14,925 bases of DNA from Wallemia ichthyophaga EXF-994 (taxonomy: Eukaryota > Fungi > Basidiomycota). The DNA is taken from positions 1-14,925 of the forward strand of contig NW_008806308.1 in assembly GCF_000400465.1 (NCBI RefSeq), written 5' to 3'. Below, in pieces: positions 2,612-11,759 of the stretch. The translations under genes and the position numbers were made by a program. Below the pieces are notes generated by a model that was not told the DNA's origin, did no database searches, and saw only the letters and a program-made list of their open reading frames with translations. The number at the start of each line of letters is the position of its first letter. The stretch's first letter is position 1.

Positions 2612-3181
2612 CTATCTAGATTTTATAGAGGTGATGCTTTCTTGAGATTCTTCAGTATCTTGTATGGCGTCAGCTTGAGAGACCTAAAAGAGATGAGAAA
2701 GGAGTACACGATAGAGACGCCCACTGACATTCCTAAGCACATTTTTCTTGGAAGATTCTTGCAGCTCTCCAGCTATAATCAGCTCATCAAGTATCGAGAA
2801 GGCCTTTTGGAAGTTGAAAATCAAATCCAACTCGCAAACGTTACCAAAGTATCTGTCTAATATTTCAACGTATCTGTGGATAACTTCAAGTGCAATCAAC
2901 TCGTTATCATTATGGCTGACCCCGCAGATAAAGAATAAACTGGCGTATCTCCTGTAAACGATCTTTGAATCTTTGTATTCCAAGAAATTGCACATTTTAG
3001 TCCTTCTACTGAGTACGAGCTGTGTGACGTCCTTGATCAGCTTGGACTTGATTTTCGGTTGAGTCATTATGAACCATTTTGATAGCCTGACTTTTCCTTG
3101 CCTTGAGACTAGAAGGAGCTAGGAGTGGAATATTTATATGTGTTATTCGATACAGCCGCCCAGACTCACATACTCAATCAT
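2612..3181 (-). CDS. APS1: AP-1 clathrin adaptor complex small (sigma-1) subunit; about 157 aa, 3 exons
   Basis: Exons 3181-3170 (MIEY), 3118-2729, 2683-2612; introns 3119-3169 (51 nt) and 2684-2728 (45 nt). Product [20 protein letters not shown]...[12 protein letters not shown]...[19 protein letters not shown]...[18 protein letters not shown] is typical of sigma-1 adaptins. Confidence 0.95.
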
Positions 3182-3195
3182 GGTTCAATTCAACA

Positions 3196-4830
3196 ATGAA
3201 TACGCTCAACAGATCTCTATATTTACTAGGAAATTACTTTAATTTTGTTGAATTTTTAGTCTTGGATAGTGTTTTGAATGGGTGTAGATCATTATCACTC
3301 TATTTGGATATATCAAATTACTCTTTTAGATTGATTTACGCGGGAAATCAATCTATTGATGAGAATTTATTGGATCTAATCAGACAGTTGTCCTCTGTAG
3401 AGCTCAGTGATTCAAACAATGTACTTGTTTCACAGATTTTCTACTCTTTCCCCCTTAGAAGGAAGTTAATCAATTTTAGCTACGAGTTTAATAGAATAGT
3501 TGAGATTTTACAACATATAAGCATATATAGTCACTCGTTAGATATTAAGCTTCATTCTGATAGCAGTAAACTTACTTTACCACCTTCATTCGATACTCTA
3601 TCTGCATTCAATCAGGTACATAGTACCAACATCCATCAAGTACATGAACTATCTCATCACTCTCATCAACTCAGCATAGAAGGATTTATAGCCCTCGATC
3701 GTCATTTTACTTCAGCATATCAGCATTTGTACATCAATCATCATCATTTGGATAGACAACATAGCATAAGCATCTCACTCAATAACGCACTCAATAAAGC
3801 AATCACAGAAAAGAACAAGCACGCCATCTTCGTCATCAAGATACATCTCCCGCTCTCAAAATTAGACTGTTTCAATAACACACTGCATATCGATAACGAC
3901 AAACACATCATATCAATCCTGAACCAAATTATCCAAGATTTTATTACTAAGTATGGCTATAACGACAGTAGCAGGCATCTGCATTCCCTCTCAAATGCAG
4001 CGAGAAAGAGCACACGCAAGACGATCAAACGTAACTCAGTCAGCAGCAATCAGCAATCGAAATGGCTAGAGGGGATATTAGGCGTGAGTGTAATGCTTCC
4101 ATACAAGCACTCTACTAACTCCCGCTAGAAATGGCAGAATCCAGTCTATGAACGAAGCAGGACGCTATCGACTAGACGTTCCCTCACACGCACAACTTCT
4201 ATGCAACCTACACCTTCACCTGCTCCTGGCGAGACTGCGACGCACACGCGCAAAATTACCCGTAAAGACCTCGAGAAAACCCAGGTAATAGGGCAAGTCG
4301 ATAGCAAGTTTATAGTTGCACTATCGACCAATACGCTGCTCATCTTCGATCAGCATGCTGCCGATGAGCGTGTGAAGCTAGAGAGGTATATGAACCAATT
4401 ACTCAGTCGAGAGAACGTATTGCTCGTTTCGCCTAGTATTCGGGTGCGACTGACAGCGATAGAAGTTTACACCCTCCTCTCCAACACTGCAATAGTTGAG
4501 ATGTGGGGGCTATTGCTGCGTCCCCATGACGAACAAGAGGTATGCATCAACACGCTGCCCAACGTTATACACGACAGACTACTCAAAGACCATTCACTCC
4601 TCAGAGATATACTCAGAGAGTGTGTTGATGCACACAACCAACACACTTCTCACACACCTCCCACCTTGCTCAACCTGATTAATTCAAAGGCATGTCGAAA
4701 CGCTTTCAAGTTTGGCGATGTGCTGTCCAATACACAGTCCCAAGCACTTATCAGCGCGCTCTCACAAACTAAAAACCCATACCAATGCGCACATGGCCGT
4801 CCTACGCTATACCCTTTGTTAGAATGTTAA
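3196..4830 (+). CDS. MLH3: MutL homolog MLH3 (MutL-gamma endonuclease subunit) with a highly diverged, shortened N-terminal domain; about 529 aa, 2 exons
   Basis: Exons 3196-4083 and 4129-4830; intron 4084-4128 (GTGAGT...TACTAAC...TAG, 45 nt). The endonuclease motif DQHAADERVKLE (4348-4383), SKACRNAFKFGD and QCAHGRPT are present. The MLH3-type motifs KWQNPVY and QVIGQVDSKFI and the N-terminal remnant FYSFPLRRK are also present. ATG 3196 is in good context (ACAATG). The track's TTG start at 3103 overlaps APS1 and is unlikely. Confidence 0.87.
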
Positions 4831-6257: not shown

Positions 6258-9200
6258 CTACACTTTATTCCACTGCTCTATCCTCGCTGCGACGCCTGGA
6301 AATCTTCCCTCGTCCTTCTCATCAGAGCTTTTCTGACTGGGGCTTGCATCAGCATACATTGACACAGGTCGTGCGTTTGAGTGTTTGTTTGGGATTCGTT
6401 TCGGTGAAATGTGCTGTTTTTCTGGACTCTTAGGTATGATCGGTGTCGCAGGTGTTGTCAATGTCGCAGGTGCTTTGGACGTTTTTTGTCCCGCCATAGA
6501 CTCTGGTTTGGGTTTAGGTTTGACATGCGACAGTGGAGCTTTATCCCCCTTAACTTCCATCTCCTGTACGTCCATTGTCATGGTCTCATAACGATCTACC
6601 ATAGATGCAGCACGGGCGTGTGTGCGTGGGCGTGAATGCAATATGTGTCTGCGTCCTGAATTTTGCGTGGTGTTGGCGGTGGTATTTGAGTTTTGCGATA
6701 GTGAATGTGTCTGCTCTTCATTGTCATTCTCCTTCCTACTACTACTTTCTGATGATTTGGTACTTGTGAGTTTAGGTTTGGGTTTGACGGACGGCTTTGC
6801 GTCTGCTTGGGATGACACGCGAGACTGCTGAGACTGCTGAGACTGAGACTTTGATGGGTAGTCTACATCTACGTCTATCAGCTGTGAAGTTGCTGGAGCT
6901 GTAATATGTCAGTTGCCATCTTCTAATTTGCACAGACGTACATGTATCGGCTGTCACTGTTGAGGTTTGCGTGTTTGTCTGTGTACCAGTGCCACCAGAA
7001 TCAGGATCTGGGTATATATCGACAAGCATTCCGGTGTGTACTGCCTTTTGACCTCTATCTCTATCGCTATCTCTTTCTCCCTTTCTTTCTCTATCTCTCT
7101 GCCATGTGTTCTCTGGTTGGACCGAATGCACCGATGGATCGCTGTCAAGTAGCGCTTTTTGCGCACTTTGCACAGCCTGTGCACTTTCCGTACTCCGTAC
7201 ACCCTCTTCTTTCACTGGCGATATCAGCGGGTATGCATTCTTGTCGTATCCTTTATCGAGCACATCGTGCACGTCGCGCTCCGACTGCGCTTTGGTGCGT
7301 TCGGCGTCCTTCTCAATCAATATCTGGAGGTTACTCTTTTTCTTAGAAGGTGGTGGTGATGAGTGTGGTAGTGTGCTTGTTTTGTGTGTTGTGTGTGGTG
7401 TTGCCGAAGTGCTGAATTTATCGAGCTCGTGCTGCTCACCAACTCCGCTTACAAGAGGGGAAGGTGGACGTTGAGAAGAAGGCGGATTAGACGGTGTCTG
7501 ACCAAGCTCTGTAGACGGCGCTTGCACGGTGTTGTCGACCTCCTGGCGCAACTCCTGTGGCTTTTTCTCTTCTTCACTTTTTTGCTTCTCTTCTTTCTCT
7601 TTCACCACCTGCTTCTCTTGCTCCTCTTCCTCCAAATTTTTCTCGTTGGTCGTGGATGATATGGCATAGTTCCTACTCAGCGGATACTCAATATCTTCCG
7701 CATCGTCGTCGGAGGATGACAGGGAATGTGAGTGTGAGTGTGGGCGAGGGTGAGTATCAGACAATGTATTTGAATTGCTGTCAATTCTTCCACCAATTTC
7801 CTCTTCATCTTTACCACGCGCATCTGGCACATTCAAGTTTTGCACGCTCTGCAAATCTTGCATGTGTTCTGACGGTATGAGCGGCGAAGGTGAGCGCACT
7901 TCAACCTTATTCGACAGGTGAGGGGGGAGTGCGCCGTTTTTGTGCTCGTAGATGTCGTGTTGGTCACTTTCCACTTTCCACTTCTCCCTTCCACTACCAC
8001 TACCAGCCCCGGTGACATCCATCAAATCCTCCATCTGCACACTCTTCCCACTGCCAGGGCTAGAAGATGACAGTTGGCGAGGGACGCGTAGATGACGTGG
8101 GAGTATCTCCTCGATCACTAGCTCGTCTGGACTATCTGGACTGTCTGGGGTGTATGGGCTTTGTGCATCTTTCACGCCATCTACGCGCACAGTTGTGCGT
8201 GATAGAGTATCAAATTGATCGCCAAACGCTTCCAGATCTGGGAAACGCGATTCAGGGTCGTCATTGATATTGACATCGTTAGTGGGAGTGATAGTCGGAG
8301 TAGAGCTAGTTGTACTTGTAGCTGTAGGGGTATCAACAGCGGTATTAGCCGGCATGGTGGGTGGATTGCGCGTGGATGCTGGTGATTGTCTTTGATTGCC
8401 TTGGTTCAACTTGTTAGGGAGGGATTTGGATGTGTGTGGAGTGGGAGTGGGGGTCTTTGCAGACGTCGTTGATGTCGTTTGTATTGTCTTAAGTGGCTGG
8501 AGTGGTTGGGAGGGGGTGTCTGAATGGCTTGCTTGAACACCTCTAACAGCTCCGCCTGTGCGGTGATCACCACTCTCACCTGACTTCACACGTCCTCTAC
8601 GCAGTGGCGGCGTATCGGAGGGGGAAAGCAGGTTTTGCTTGTAAATGGCGGGCTGCTGTGGGGGAGTTGGAAGCGGGCGGCTTTTACCTTTCACAGGAAT
8701 AGGTGAGGGTTGTTTGGGTTGCTTGGGTTGTGGAGGATGGAATAAATGTAGCGTTCCGCGCATCTGGTGGACGCGTCTGAGTATATCCACAGCAGCTGGT
8801 CTCTCGCGTGGGACCTGCCTCAACATTGAGCTGATAAGTGTGTTGAGCGTGGAGGAGTAGAGTGGTGAAGTGGGTATAGTGTATTGTGCGTGCAGAATAG
8901 CCAGACTATCCACGCCCCCTTGCCCATTCTCGAATGGAGTGGTATAATAGCATAGCTTGTACAGCAGCACGCCAAGTGCCCAGATATCGCTCTTCTCGTC
9001 AATGTACCGTGATTGGGGAAGGTTTATCATTTCTGGTGATCTGTATTGCAGCGTTGTAACTCGGTTTATTTCCTCTTCTAGCCGTTTTATATCGTCGACG
9101 GATGACAGCTGTTGTGGATGCACTGGGAGCAGAGTTGCGCTGCCAAAATCGCACAGCTTGTACACGCTCCCTGAGGATTTGAGAATGTTTTCTATTTTAA

Positions 9201-9724
9201 GGTCGCGGTGGAGGATTCTGAGAGAGTGCATGTGTGCGAGTGCATCACTCACGCCCACAAAGACATCGAGTATCTGCTGCTCGGATAAGCGCGTTTTTAG
9301 GTGCTGGTTCATAACGTCAATCAAACCACCACCGGGGCACAGCTCCATCAGTATAAACACCTCGTGACCGCCCTGCGGAAGTTTATACGCAGCGGCGTCG
9401 ATGAGGTTGACAATGTGAGGCGAGTTGCGCACCAGCTTCATCATCTCCACTTCGTTGCCGACTTCTTGGAGAGAGGCGAGTGAGGCTACGGCTACACGCT
9501 TGAGCACGTGGCTGTAGGCGTTGTAGATGGGCAGCTGGGAGGTGCAGATGTAGACGTGGGCATATCCGCCTGAGATGGGAGATGAAAGATGTGCTACGTG
9601 AGCGAGATGGAGATGAAATATAACGTATATGCTCACCGGCGCTGAGATATCTGTCGATAAACAGCGTGTGCACCCCAACTTTGATCTTTGTGCCGCGCGA
9701 GAGTAAGCCGGGAGATGAGTTCAT
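6258..9724 (-). CDS. NAK-family (Ark1/Prk1/Akl1, AAK1-like) Ser/Thr kinase regulating endocytosis and actin patches, with a long disordered C-tail; about 1118 aa, 3 exons
   Basis: Exons 9724-9637, 9569-6942, 6898-6258 total 3357 nt; introns 9570-9636 (67 nt) and 6899-6941 (43 nt). Spliced Gly-loop DRYLSAG|GYAHVY, then VLKR, HRDLKIENIL, LCDFGSA, TTLQYRSPEMI and KSDIWALGVLLYKLCYYTTPFE, which are diagnostic of fungal NAK kinases. Confidence 0.93.
6821..6850 (-). repeat. In-frame coding tandem repeat (SQSQQSQQS) in the kinase tail
   Basis: Plus strand reads gagactgct gagactgct gagact gagact. Confidence 0.7.
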
Positions 9725-9788
9725 GGAGGTACGGGAACAAGAAGGATATTCAGTGATAAAAAGAGATTGCAGGAGATGATAAGAGATG

Positions 9789-10085
9789 TCAATCTAATAT
9801 CTGGAAGGTATTGCGCTCAAGCTCCTTCTCAACTTCAAATTTAATAGTCTGTACGCTGTCAGGGCTGACGAGGATGTGCTGGAGATCTAAATCCTGGATA
9901 ATGAATCTCTTCCTGTCGTTGAGATTGAGGATAATCTGCTTCACGGCGGGATCGCTGTGGGTGGTGAGAAGGAGCCTATGAAAACAGTGCGAGCACACCA
10001 ACTAATAAGAATTCCTGGATTTAATTTAAATTTTGAATAATTTATGTTTCCCGTGATTACACTCACCTTTGCTGGCTTTGACCAT
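9789..10085 (-). CDS. TFB5: TFIIH subunit Tfb5 (p8/TTD-A); 66 aa, 3 exons
   Basis: Exons 10085-10067 (19 nt), 10014-9999 (16 nt), 9954-9789 total 201 nt; introns 52 and 44 nt. Product: MVKASKGILISCDPAVKQIILNLNDRKRFIIQDLDLQHILVSPDSVQTIKFEVEKELERNTFQILD. Confidence 0.92.
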
Positions 10086-10178
10086 TACAGTGAGGATTGT
10101 GGAGATATGAGGAAATTATCAGCGTCAAAAGCCGATAAATCTTTAGACTGGCGCTGTGTCCGGGGCTCTGGGAACTCA

Positions 10179-11759
10179 ATGGAAGATGAAATTATGGATC
10201 TGTACAAGTCAACTCTCCCCTCCGCTGCTGTTATAAACAAGCGTAACGATCTAATCACCAGAGTTTCATCCACAATTTCCAACAAATACGGGTCCAATTA
10301 TGCCGTTCAATGTTTCGGCTCCACTTGCTACCAAGTTGATTCCGCCTCTTCCGATCTCGATCTCGTCATGACCGATAGACACCGCCCAAACGGCTTTGAT
10401 CCTTCTGTTGACATGGATACACTCCCATCCGCGTACAACCCCAACAACGTCGCTAAAACCCTCCTCAACCACAATTTCAATCAAGTCCAGCCAATCTTCG
10501 CCGCCGTGCCTATTGTCAAATTCTCTGACTCAAAATCCAATCTCCAGTGCGACTTGAACGCTAACAACCTCTTTGGCATACGCAACTCCCTCCTTATCAA
10601 AGCCTACCTCGATCTCAGTCCGATAGCCAGGCCAGTCGTGCTCGCTGTGAAGAATTGGGCTAAATTGCGTGGTTTGAACGACAGCGCTGGTCAATATGGC
10701 CCTACAACCCTCTCATCCTACACGCTTATCCTTATGGTCATCTCATTCCTCCAGGTCGTGGGCCACCTACCCAACCTCCAAGACCCTGACCAGATCCGTG
10801 CAGCAGGCCTGCAAGAGCAGCGTCTCTGGGTGCGTCCCCCCACCAAGCGTCCAAAGGATCTCAAGAAGGAGCGCTCAAGATCTGACAATTCAAATACAAA
10901 TACAAATTCTCAGTCTGTCTCACCACCTACGAGCAACGTTCGCGTCTCATTCGACACTACTTTCGTTGAAGCACCCCTGCGCAACTTTGTCCCTTCCCCG
11001 CTCTCCCTCTCCACCGCTCTCAGCGGTTTCTTCTACTACTACTCGACGCGTTCCAACAAAATCGACAACGATTACTGGCGGGTGAGTGGGCCATTCAACT
11101 ACGAGACGAGCATTATATCGATAAAGCATGGTGGGTTTTTACCACGCGACGATCTTTTTGTGGATCCATATAGTGGGAGTGTGAGTGGAGGTGGAGGTGA
11201 GAGCGAGAGTGGTGCGAATAAAGACAAGAACACCAACAATATCCAACCAAGTCAGCCCTTGCAGTGGCGTGAACAACTCCTTGTCACCCAGGATCCATTT
11301 ATCGTTACTCGAAACACTTCCACCAATGTCCGCTCAGGAACGAGCAGCCATATCATAGAGGAGTTTGCGCGGGCTTATGAGCTCGTTAGCTGTGGCAAGA
11401 GCTATTCGGAACTATGCGAGAAACGCACGACGGCATTCCAAGGCGAGCCTGGGCCTGGTAGCTTCAGACGCCCGCTGAGGAAGATGGTGAGCAGACGGAA
11501 AAAGAGCGGCGGGAAGCAGCCTGCGGATGGTCAAGAGAGCAAGGAGAGCGAGGGGAGCAGGGATGCTAAGGTTACTAAGGATGCCACGGAGAAGGACAGC
11601 AAGGCGGATAAAGATAAAGACAAGGTAGACAAGGAAAAAAGAGAAGCTGCGATCAAACGCAAAAGGAATGCTCGAAAGAAGGCTCTTAGTAAGAGTAAAA
11701 GTGCGAGTGGGAATACTGGTGCCGATACTGGTGCTACTCCCGCCAAAATCTCCACATAG
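10179..11759 (+). CDS. Cid1-family non-canonical poly(A)/poly(U) polymerase (terminal nucleotidyltransferase, Pol-beta fold plus PAP-associated domain) with a basic C-tail
   Basis: Uninterrupted ORF. Motifs: FGSTCYQVDSASSDLDLV (GS plus DxD, 10314-10361), third Asp in QCDLNANNLFGIRNS, VKNWAKLRGLND...TLSSYTLILMVISFLQ, and nucleotide-recognition motif QDPFIVTRN (11289-11315). The start is uncertain: in-frame ATGs lie at 10044 (inside the TFB5 intron, antisense), 10107, 10179 and 10194. Confidence 0.9.
   Translation: MEDEIMDLYKSTLPSAAVINKRNDLITRVSSTISNKYGSNYAVQCFGSTCYQVDSASSDLDLVMTDRHRPNGFDPSVDMDTLPSAYNPNNVAKTLLNHNFNQVQPIFAAVPIVKFSDSKSNLQCDLNANNLFGIRNSLLIKAYLDLSPIARPVVLAVKNWAKLRGLNDSAGQYGPTTLSSYTLILMVISFLQVVGHLPNLQDPDQIRAAGLQEQRLWVRPPTKRPKDLKKERSRSDNSNTNTNSQSVSPPTSNVRVSFDTTFVEAPLRNFVPSPLSLSTALSGFFYYYSTRSNKIDNDYWRVSGPFNYETSIISIKHGGFLPRDDLFVDPYSGSVSGGGGESESGANKDKNTNNIQPSQPLQWREQLLVTQDPFIVTRNTSTNVRSGTSSHIIEEFARAYELVSCGKSYSELCEKRTTAFQGEPGPGSFRRPLRKMVSRRKKSGGKQPADGQESKESEGSRDAKVTKDATEKDSKADKDKDKVDKEKREAAIKRKRNARKKALSKSKSASGNTGADTGATPAKIST

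Follow-up and report, generated by a model that had tools for sequence, protein, structure and literature searches.

Does the MLH3 gene of Wallemia ichthyophaga encode a MutL protein that has kept its endonuclease and lost its ATPase? The question is raised by positions 3196-4830 of a 14,925-nt stretch of the W. ichthyophaga EXF-994 genome (the window, to which all coordinates refer, on the + strand unless stated). A first-pass annotation, made from the letters of the sequence, had read this locus as an MLH3 with perfect C-terminal metal-binding motifs, an unbroken frame, and an N-terminal GHKL domain from which the ATP-binding residues and the lid were missing. W. ichthyophaga, a basidiomycete and obligate halophile, has a compact genome of 9.6 Mb, and the same two-exon MLH3 was found on a syntenic contig of a related Wallemia-like species (Logan assembly SRR25399871, referred to here as L001) with the gene order AP-sigma, MLH3, TMA46, kinase, Cid1-like, and Zn-cluster transcription factor. 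The evidence for an ATPase-less MLH3 comes from this one small lineage (W. ichthyophaga and L001). Taken as a whole, the locus is probably best explained as a two-exon MLH3 gene with a standard nuclease half, a dismantled nucleotide pocket, and a structural role for its N-terminal half.

The C-terminal half of the protein is, by sequence and fold comparison, an MLH3-type (MutL-gamma) endonuclease and dimerization domain. Pfam MutL_C (PF08676) matched residues 350 to 493 with 56.7 bits against a cut-off of 25 (E 2.7e-15), and the best sequence match in the PDB was the C-terminal domain of yeast Mlh3 (6rmn_B; 70 bits, E 1.6e-18). Foldseek matched the domain to MutL and Mlh3 C-terminal domains, with 6shx_B, 6rmn_B, and 6sns_B at the top (E ~5e-13, TM score 0.67-0.71), and the top database matches to the window protein are named MLH3 and belong to Cryptococcus. 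A PMS1/PMS2 identity was rejected because yeast Pms1 scored 50 bits (E 1.5e-12) against the 70 of Mlh3, the last metal-binding motif reads CAHGRP and not CPHGRP, and the Foldseek ranking agrees; on the same three grounds, the original assignment to MLH3 stands. The metal-binding motifs of endonuclease-type MutL proteins are all intact, as had been claimed for them, and all are conserved in L001. The DQHA(X)2E(X)4E motif (4348-4383; DQHAADERVKLE) aligns to DQHACDERIRLE of yeast Mlh3 and reads DQHAVDERVKLE in L001, and the ACR motif (4690-4698, inside NSKACRNAFKFGD) and the CAHGRP motif (4786-4803), the MLH3-type variant of CPHGRP, are identical in the two species. In its C-terminal fold and in all of its metal motifs, including CAHGRP, the protein resembles the Mlh3/MLH3 subunit of MutL-gamma (Saccharomyces cerevisiae Mlh1-Mlh3; 6RMN, 6SHX), and it is predicted to be an active nuclease. 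As for a second MLH3-type gene in the genome, no other Wallemia protein appeared among the 114 matches listed, which come from a collection in which Wallemia proteomes beyond W. ichthyophaga seem to be poorly represented.

Comparison of the two species indicates that positions 3196-4830 are one two-exon gene encoding a single 529-aa MLH3 orthologue. Before splicing, the locus consists of an open reading frame (ORF) at 3103-4128, which ends at an in-frame TAG (4126-4128), and a separate ORF at 4201-4830. The frame is thus not unbroken in the genomic sequence, as had been supposed, but it is open once a 45-nt spliceosomal intron (4084-4128; GTGAGT...TACTAAC...TAG) that contains the TAG is removed. 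Splicing brings 296 and 233 codons together in one frame, for the 529 residues that had been estimated. Exon 1 (3196-4083; residues 1-296) is open from its first in-frame ATG and encodes a degenerate GHKL remnant (residues ~1-80), a transducer-like domain (~81-250), and the start of a disordered linker, and exon 2 (4129-4830; residues 297-529 and the stop codon) encodes the remainder of the linker, followed by the dimerization/endonuclease domain of the MutL C-terminus. The two exons are assigned to one protein mainly because an MLH3 linker motif spans their junction. This motif, SKWLEGILG/KWQNPVY (SKWLEGILGKWQNPVY, 4057-4149, residues 288-303), is split by the intron and matches the pattern W(I/L)..(I/L)L..W.NP(V/I)(F/Y) that characterizes the MLH3 orthologue group, with the counterparts SWIKSILTDWENPIF in P0004, LWAESLLKNWKNPVF in P0005, and EWKNPVF in P0083. 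The linker motif, in the form W..L..W.NPV(F/Y), is shared with yeast Mlh3, as are the transducer homology and the order of the domains. The orthologous intron in L001 is 46 nt long, which makes splicing obligatory there, and the C-terminal domain of L001 is in frame only once the intron is spliced out. The introns of the window and L001 are 61% identical; the eight codons 3' of the 4128 acceptor show five synonymous differences and no nonsynonymous ones, and protein conservation between the two starts exactly at Met1.

Existing annotations of the locus are confined to the C-terminal domain, and no NCBI annotation lies over exon 1 (window 3196-4083; L004 1496-2383). The W. ichthyophaga reference annotation gives the 235-aa EOQ98664.1, which starts at an ATG at 4062 in another frame and joins the donor at 4084 to an acceptor at 4144; this model would remove KWQNPV from the linker motif. 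The population genomes of W. ichthyophaga carry 209- or 235-aa MLH3 models, the 209-aa ones beginning at Met321 (4201), and the ORF at 4201-4830 is exactly TIA68395.1, a member of the same cluster as EOQ98664.1, "DNA mismatch repair protein MLH3 [W. ichthyophaga EXF-994]." Both the 235-aa and the 209-aa models were rejected, as their start codons and acceptor are not conserved in L001, where the reference ATG (4062) is GTG, the 4144 acceptor has no AG, and Met321 is Leu. Additional coding sequence at 3103-3195 was also rejected; it is in frame but contains no ATG, is not conserved with L001, and overlaps the AP-sigma start codon (3181-3179, opposite strand). A tblastn search with seven canonical MLH3 N-termini against the window and L001 to L003 in all frames revealed no hidden canonical GHKL exon or frameshifted motifs, and only the FY..P.RR element was recovered (best match, 3379-3474). 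Scans of the window for tRNAs and tandem repeats gave nothing relevant.

Aligned to its orthologues, the N-terminal half of the protein is the descendant of a GHKL-plus-transducer module in which the nucleotide pocket has been dismantled. Pfam did not find HATPase_c in the window MLH3, and DNA_mis_repair (PF01119) scored 20.4 bits, below its 26-bit cut-off. With a profile built from 31 fungal and plant MLH3 N-terminal domains, hmmsearch matched residues 75 to 193 (9e-17) and 201 to 287 (1.9e-10), which run from the LFYN.PVRRK element through the transducer, and hhalign aligned residues 3 to 298 with profile columns 18 to 417 (probability 99.3%, E 1.2e-20). The residue mapping given by hhalign is the same as that given by MAFFT --add to the 31 domains. 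Former motif I (3247-3282) reads VEFLVLDSVLNG (VEYLLFDRLISG in L001) against an MLH3 consensus of VSELLQNSLDAG. The changes include replacement of the catalytic Glu by Phe20 and of the Mg/ATP-binding Asn by Asp24, both of which had been proposed and were reproduced by the two alignment methods, and of the Asp of NSxDA by Leu27. Former motif II (3337-3351; DxGxG, or DDGxG in MLH3) reads YAGNQ (YGGNH in L001), with Tyr48 in place of the adenine-contacting Asp, the first Gly kept (Gly50), and Gln52 in place of the second Gly. The adjoining lid-deletion site (3352-3414) contains 21 residues (53-73) instead of the ~90 canonical residues that carry the GFRGEAL lid and part of the beta-sheet. The deletion of about 70 residues takes out the lid, leaving ~74 residues where canonical proteins have ~145. 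The segment NNVLVSQIFYSFPLRRK (3415-3465) comprises former motif IV and the conserved LFYN.PVRRK element, with which significant matching to MLH3 profiles begins; here, the GT(T)V of motif IV reads NNV and the element reads FYSFPLRRK (3439-3465). In the transducer, the loop LDCFNNT (3862-3882; LDSFNNT in L001) has undergone a 4-residue deletion that removes the Lys of "EPsK" (equivalent to K307 of E. coli MutL, the gamma-phosphate sensor), and the N-terminal strap is shorter by 16 residues.

The readings of motif II, the lid, and the sensor loop in the first-pass annotation were borne out by the same MAFFT and hhalign mapping, and neither profile nor structure comparison recovered the canonical Glu, Asn, Asp-x-Gly, or lid residues. 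Motifs I to IV, by which the GHKL domain of the MutL family is defined, are not present in canonical form, and the protein belongs to MLH3 by its C-terminal domain, linker, and transducer. It is unlike yeast Mlh3 in having lost GHKL motifs I, II, and IV, the lid, the sensor Lys, and part of the strap, and unlike MLH3 elsewhere in its length of 529 aa, compared with 715 aa in yeast and ~800 to 900 aa in other basidiomycetes. When 1.84 billion cluster representatives were searched with HMMER using a profile of the Wallemia N-terminal domain, the sole close relative was its own cluster, and the other 143 matches all started at query residue ~73, corresponding to their own residue ~143. Residues 1 to 70 had no match anywhere in these representatives in an exhaustive HMMER search. 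In the AlphaFold2 model (mean pLDDT 84, pTM 0.73), the N-terminal remnant is predicted with pLDDT values of 80 to 90 as a helix (residues 14-27) and four short strands, compared with the canonical eight-stranded sheet plus lid. It is followed by a confidently predicted transducer domain, a disordered linker (261-287 and 298-332) with a helix at 287-297, and the C-terminal domain. Foldseek matched the N-terminal part of the model to the N-terminal domains of MutL, PMS2, MLH1, and Pms1 (E 1e-9 to 6e-13).

A scan of 112 other homologues by strict patterns found motifs I and II together with the lid in 67, and every homologue that starts at the canonical N-terminus retains at least motif II. None of the motifs is present in 28, all of which start inside or after the domain, as truncated models would. 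The MLH3 proteins of Exophiala bonariae and E. mesophila (P0082 and P0098) and a Logan sequence (P0102) are full length and have Gly at the position of the catalytic Glu (VGLLENALDA, GLVENALDA, and VGLAKNSLDA) and a non-canonical lid (GRYGRFL and similar); the Asn and DxGxG are kept. Sequences of this type may mean that evolutionary lability of the MLH3 ATPase extends to other fungi. In contrast to the Wallemia protein, all three retain the Asn, DxGxG, and a full-length N-terminal domain, and they probably still bind ATP. Two chytrid MLH3 models, P0018 (Rhizoclosmatium hyalinum) and P0114 (Chytriomyces sp. MP71), contain motifs I and II and are seemingly without the GFRGEAL lid; the stretch between motif II and GTTV is shortened in both, which may be real or may reflect an exon skipped in the models.

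The gene evolves fast but under clear constraint, which is weakest in the part that has degenerated most. The ratio of nonsynonymous to synonymous substitution rates (dN/dS, or omega), estimated by the Nei-Gojobori method between the window and L001 (dS ~1), was 0.13 for the whole gene, 0.29 for residues 1 to 80 (pN/pS 0.42, bootstrap 95% interval 0.26-0.68), 0.14 for residues 81 to 250, about 0.08 for the linker, and 0.09 for the C-terminal domain. For exon 1 it was 0.18, and for the neighboring TMA46 gene it was 0.03. Four W. ichthyophaga assemblies that are independent of one another, namely the window, two Logan runs, and GCA_004917865.1, all have the gene in an open frame; by contig, the frame is open in the window, L002, L004, and L001, and in L003 over the portion covered. 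At least exon 2 is transcribed in vegetative cells, as the 235-aa model (GME4831_g) has values of 24.0 and 11.3 reads per kilobase per million mapped reads (RPKM; 333 and 160 reads) in two culture conditions (PMC3849046, supplementary file 7). A pseudogene or an assembly artefact is ruled out because the same architecture occurs in L001, dN/dS is low, four assemblies are open, and exon 2 is transcribed. The earlier view that the gene is not a pseudogene is thus sustained by dN/dS values far below 1 in every domain, and the short N-terminus is no product of assembly, being seen in the four W. ichthyophaga assemblies and in a second species. Five single-nucleotide polymorphisms (SNPs) separate the four W. 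ichthyophaga copies (3381, 3432, 3823, 3907, and 4417); they comprise four conservative replacements (I62M, A210T, I238V, and V393I) and one silent change.

An MLH3 subunit of this kind is almost certainly unable to bind or hydrolyze ATP or to join canonical ATP-driven N-terminal dimerization, to judge from the residues and segments that it has lost. Wallemia would retain MLH3 as a nuclease subunit, probably partnered with MLH1. What is left of the N-terminal half, a Bergerat fold of half size, a transducer fold that looks intact, and a linker motif that is conserved, may have been repurposed as a structural element, as a DNA- or partner-binding domain, or for docking on the N-terminal domain of MLH1. 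A structural role is suggested because the remnant, the transducer, and the linker motif are all under purifying selection. Only MLH1 would then place the heterodimer under the control of ATP, an extreme form of the known Mlh1-Pms1 asymmetry. The cellular role could be crossover resolution, mitotic or parasexual recombination, or mismatch repair of the Msh2-Msh3 type. It is also possible, and we propose it tentatively, that Wallemia has a working MutL-gamma-type nuclease whose MLH3 is structurally incapable of binding ATP, a natural separation-of-function allele in which MLH1 is the only nucleotide switch and the N-terminal module is a dedicated DNA- or partner-binding domain. If so, ATP binding by MLH3 would be dispensable when the N-terminal domain is remodeled, and together with the reduced meiotic toolkit of a recombining fungus this would amount to a rewired, minimal crossover-resolution pathway.

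Related systems offer partial parallels. Yeast Mlh2 and human PMS1 (MutL-beta) are MutL paralogues that lack one of the family's two catalytic activities and are still partners of MLH1. MutL-beta is the mirror image of the present case: its N-terminal domain is retained and its endonuclease motif is missing, whereas Wallemia MLH3 has kept the nuclease and lost the ATPase. The TopoVIB-like meiotic proteins (e.g., yeast Rec102) derive from a GHKL-plus-transducer module whose ATP-binding part is degenerate or missing and whose transducer is kept as a structural partner. Unlike Wallemia MLH3, they belong to an unrelated subfamily, have Spo11 as their partner, and contain no nuclease domain of their own. 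In MutL-alpha (Mlh1-Pms1/MLH1-PMS2), Mlh1 dominates ATP binding and hydrolysis, and mutations that abolish hydrolysis are tolerated better in the partner (PMC3538346): Mlh1 binds ATP far more tightly than Pms1, and pms1-E61A is mild relative to mlh1-E31A (reviewed in PMC3538346). The partner subunit of MutL-alpha has a complete functional pocket, however, whereas in Wallemia MLH3 the pocket itself has been removed. MutL-beta complexes are treated in a 2025 review of MutL GHKL ATPases that describes every MutL homologue with a globular N-terminal GHKL domain (PMC12733681), and we found no report of a natural MLH3 without an ATPase in the literature searched, this review included.

Several points weigh against a functional, ATP-independent MLH3 at this locus. 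The ATP-binding mutant mlh3-N35A of S. cerevisiae behaves as a null in both mismatch repair and crossing over, and the E31A mutant shows a defect in SK1 (PMC3538346); a functional MLH3 without ATP binding contradicts the only direct genetic data, since mlh3-N35A is null. The alignment used by AlphaFold2 included canonical MLH3 proteins, which makes the predicted N-terminal fold consistent with this interpretation and not independent evidence for it. It is from conservation, not from reads, that exon 1 is taken to be transcribed and the 4128 acceptor to be used. The excess of replacements among the SNPs (four of five) leaves recent relaxation conceivable, in numbers that are tiny. On the other hand, nicking and DNA binding by MutL-gamma in vitro show no ATP dependence (PMC5448812), and the role of ATP in this complex is itself a puzzle, as the yeast ATP-binding mutant is null and yet an ATP dependence has not been reconstituted in vitro. 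A naturally selected MLH3 without a nucleotide pocket would provide a test case for functions of the N-terminal domain other than ATP binding.

A meiotic framing of these results needs care, because a sexual cycle has not been observed in W. ichthyophaga and the meiotic gene set is reduced, yet the species recombines. It was first judged asexual when only Dmc1, Mer3, and Msh4 were found among eight meiosis-specific genes (PMC3849046). Population genomics has identified decay of linkage disequilibrium (LD) over ~1.3 kb and a MAT locus with two alleles, and the authors remarked that "its meiotic machinery possibly differs" (PMC6738226). The present locus bears on the sexuality of a species that recombines despite an apparently incomplete meiotic gene set. 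As annotation had cut MLH3 to its C-terminal domain, BLAST inventories of "missing" meiotic genes based on these proteomes may suffer from similar truncations and deserve reexamination. MSH4 (916 aa) is transcribed vegetatively (RPKM 30.8 and 14.8), with a drop of about two-fold in the same direction as that of the MLH3 model (PMC3849046, supplementary file 7); two genes of the class I crossover type are therefore co-regulated outside any known sexual stage. The same supplement, which covers differentially expressed genes only, places 23 genes in the KEGG category "mismatch repair," a number compatible with a full set but not proof of one (PMC3849046).

Other explanations of the locus differ in what they take the N-terminal half to be. 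That the gene consists of the C-terminal domain only (209 or 235 aa), with the upstream 296-codon ORF an untranslated relic or a separate product, is how NCBI and the original genome paper annotate it, and expression was counted on that model only; the GC content at third codon positions (GC3) is also very different in exon 1 (0.31-0.39) and exon 2 (0.49-0.58). This explanation is nevertheless improbable, given that the annotated starts (4062 and 4201) and the 4144 acceptor are missing from L001, that the 4084-4128 intron splits a conserved linker motif from which the annotated model deletes KWQNPV, and that exon 1 is homologous to MLH3 N-terminal domains and under constraint (omega 0.18) in a frame open in two species. 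If exon 1 is accepted as coding, the domain might still bind nucleotide in a non-canonical way, or it might be a pseudo-ATPase with some other ligand to sense. Points in favor are the conservation of the remnant (omega 0.29), its predicted fold at pLDDT 80 to 90, the possibility that Asp24 still coordinates a metal, and the retention of Gly50 in motif II. Against this, the protein no longer has its lid, adenine-contacting Asp, GT motif, or sensor Lys, about half of the Bergerat sheet is deleted, and to our knowledge no GHKL protein binds ATP without a lid, so that residual binding seems most unlikely.

We likewise give very little credence to the idea that the gene is a decaying relic in a lineage losing meiosis, a pseudogene in the making whose frame happens to be open still. 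It would fit with the retention of three of eight meiosis-specific genes and the unobserved sexual stage (PMC3849046), with the AT-rich N-terminal domain and its fast evolution relative to neighboring genes (protein identity of 75% versus 90 to 93%, omega of 0.13 versus 0.03), and with the four nonsynonymous SNPs out of five. It is largely refuted by omega values well under 1 in every segment at dS ~1, and the nuclease metal ligands are all intact in both species, the splice signals are conserved, the gene is transcribed, and population data show recombination and a MAT locus (PMC6738226). The remaining alternative concerns the cellular role and not the molecular anatomy, and it overlaps with the explanation favored here: the protein may function not as meiotic MutL-gamma but in vegetative cells, where it could, for instance, take part in mitotic or parasexual recombination or help Msh2-Msh3 to repair insertion/deletion loops, perhaps even without MLH1. 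The gene is transcribed in vegetative cultures, with a roughly two-fold difference between two conditions; the meiotic toolkit is reduced, parasexuality has been raised as an alternative (PMC6738226), and yeast and human MutL-gamma act in mismatch repair and repeat expansion (PMC3538346, PMC7035508). The class I crossover factor MSH4 is also present and expressed, however, and LD decays over ~1.3 kb in a species with two MAT alleles (PMC6738226), and we consider a role wholly outside meiosis possible but on balance rather unlikely.

The break in GC3 inside MLH3 is common to both species. The change is sharp: in the window, GC3 is 0.31 to 0.38 in the N-terminal part (3196-3945) and about 0.5 in the C-terminal part (4129-4830), and in L001 the corresponding values are 0.23 to 0.34 (9157-9906) and about 0.6 (10106-10783). 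Neighboring genes have values of 0.50 to 0.61. The protein encoded by exon 1 is rich in Ile, Asn, Ser, Leu, and His (7% His, e.g., INHHHLDRQH). The break may be a trace of older, relaxed, AT-biased evolution, although we have no firm explanation for it.

Upstream of MLH3 and on the opposite strand is a clathrin-adaptor sigma (AP-sigma) gene with a 12-nt first exon (3181-3170, encoding MIEY), an intron (3169-3119), and a second exon (3118-2684), in agreement with the NCBI model in GCA_004917865.1. The two genes are arranged head to head in both species, with start codons 14 nt apart (18 nt in L001), which means that the 5' untranslated region and promoter of MLH3 must lie over the first exon and intron of AP-sigma on the opposite strand. 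Farther downstream lies a nucleotidyl-transferase gene (10044-11759) with 100% identity to E3P91_04094 of W. ichthyophaga. A Ser/Thr kinase gene (6258-9678, - strand) encodes a kinase domain near its N-terminus, followed by ~650 low-complexity residues rich in Ser, Pro, and Thr. A 186-aa ORF (6258-6818) overlaps the 3' end of this gene and matches the C-terminus of a single 719-aa ORF in L001 (...GRFPGVAARI(E/Q)QWNKV), which points to an intron or a change of frame in the kinase gene of the window.

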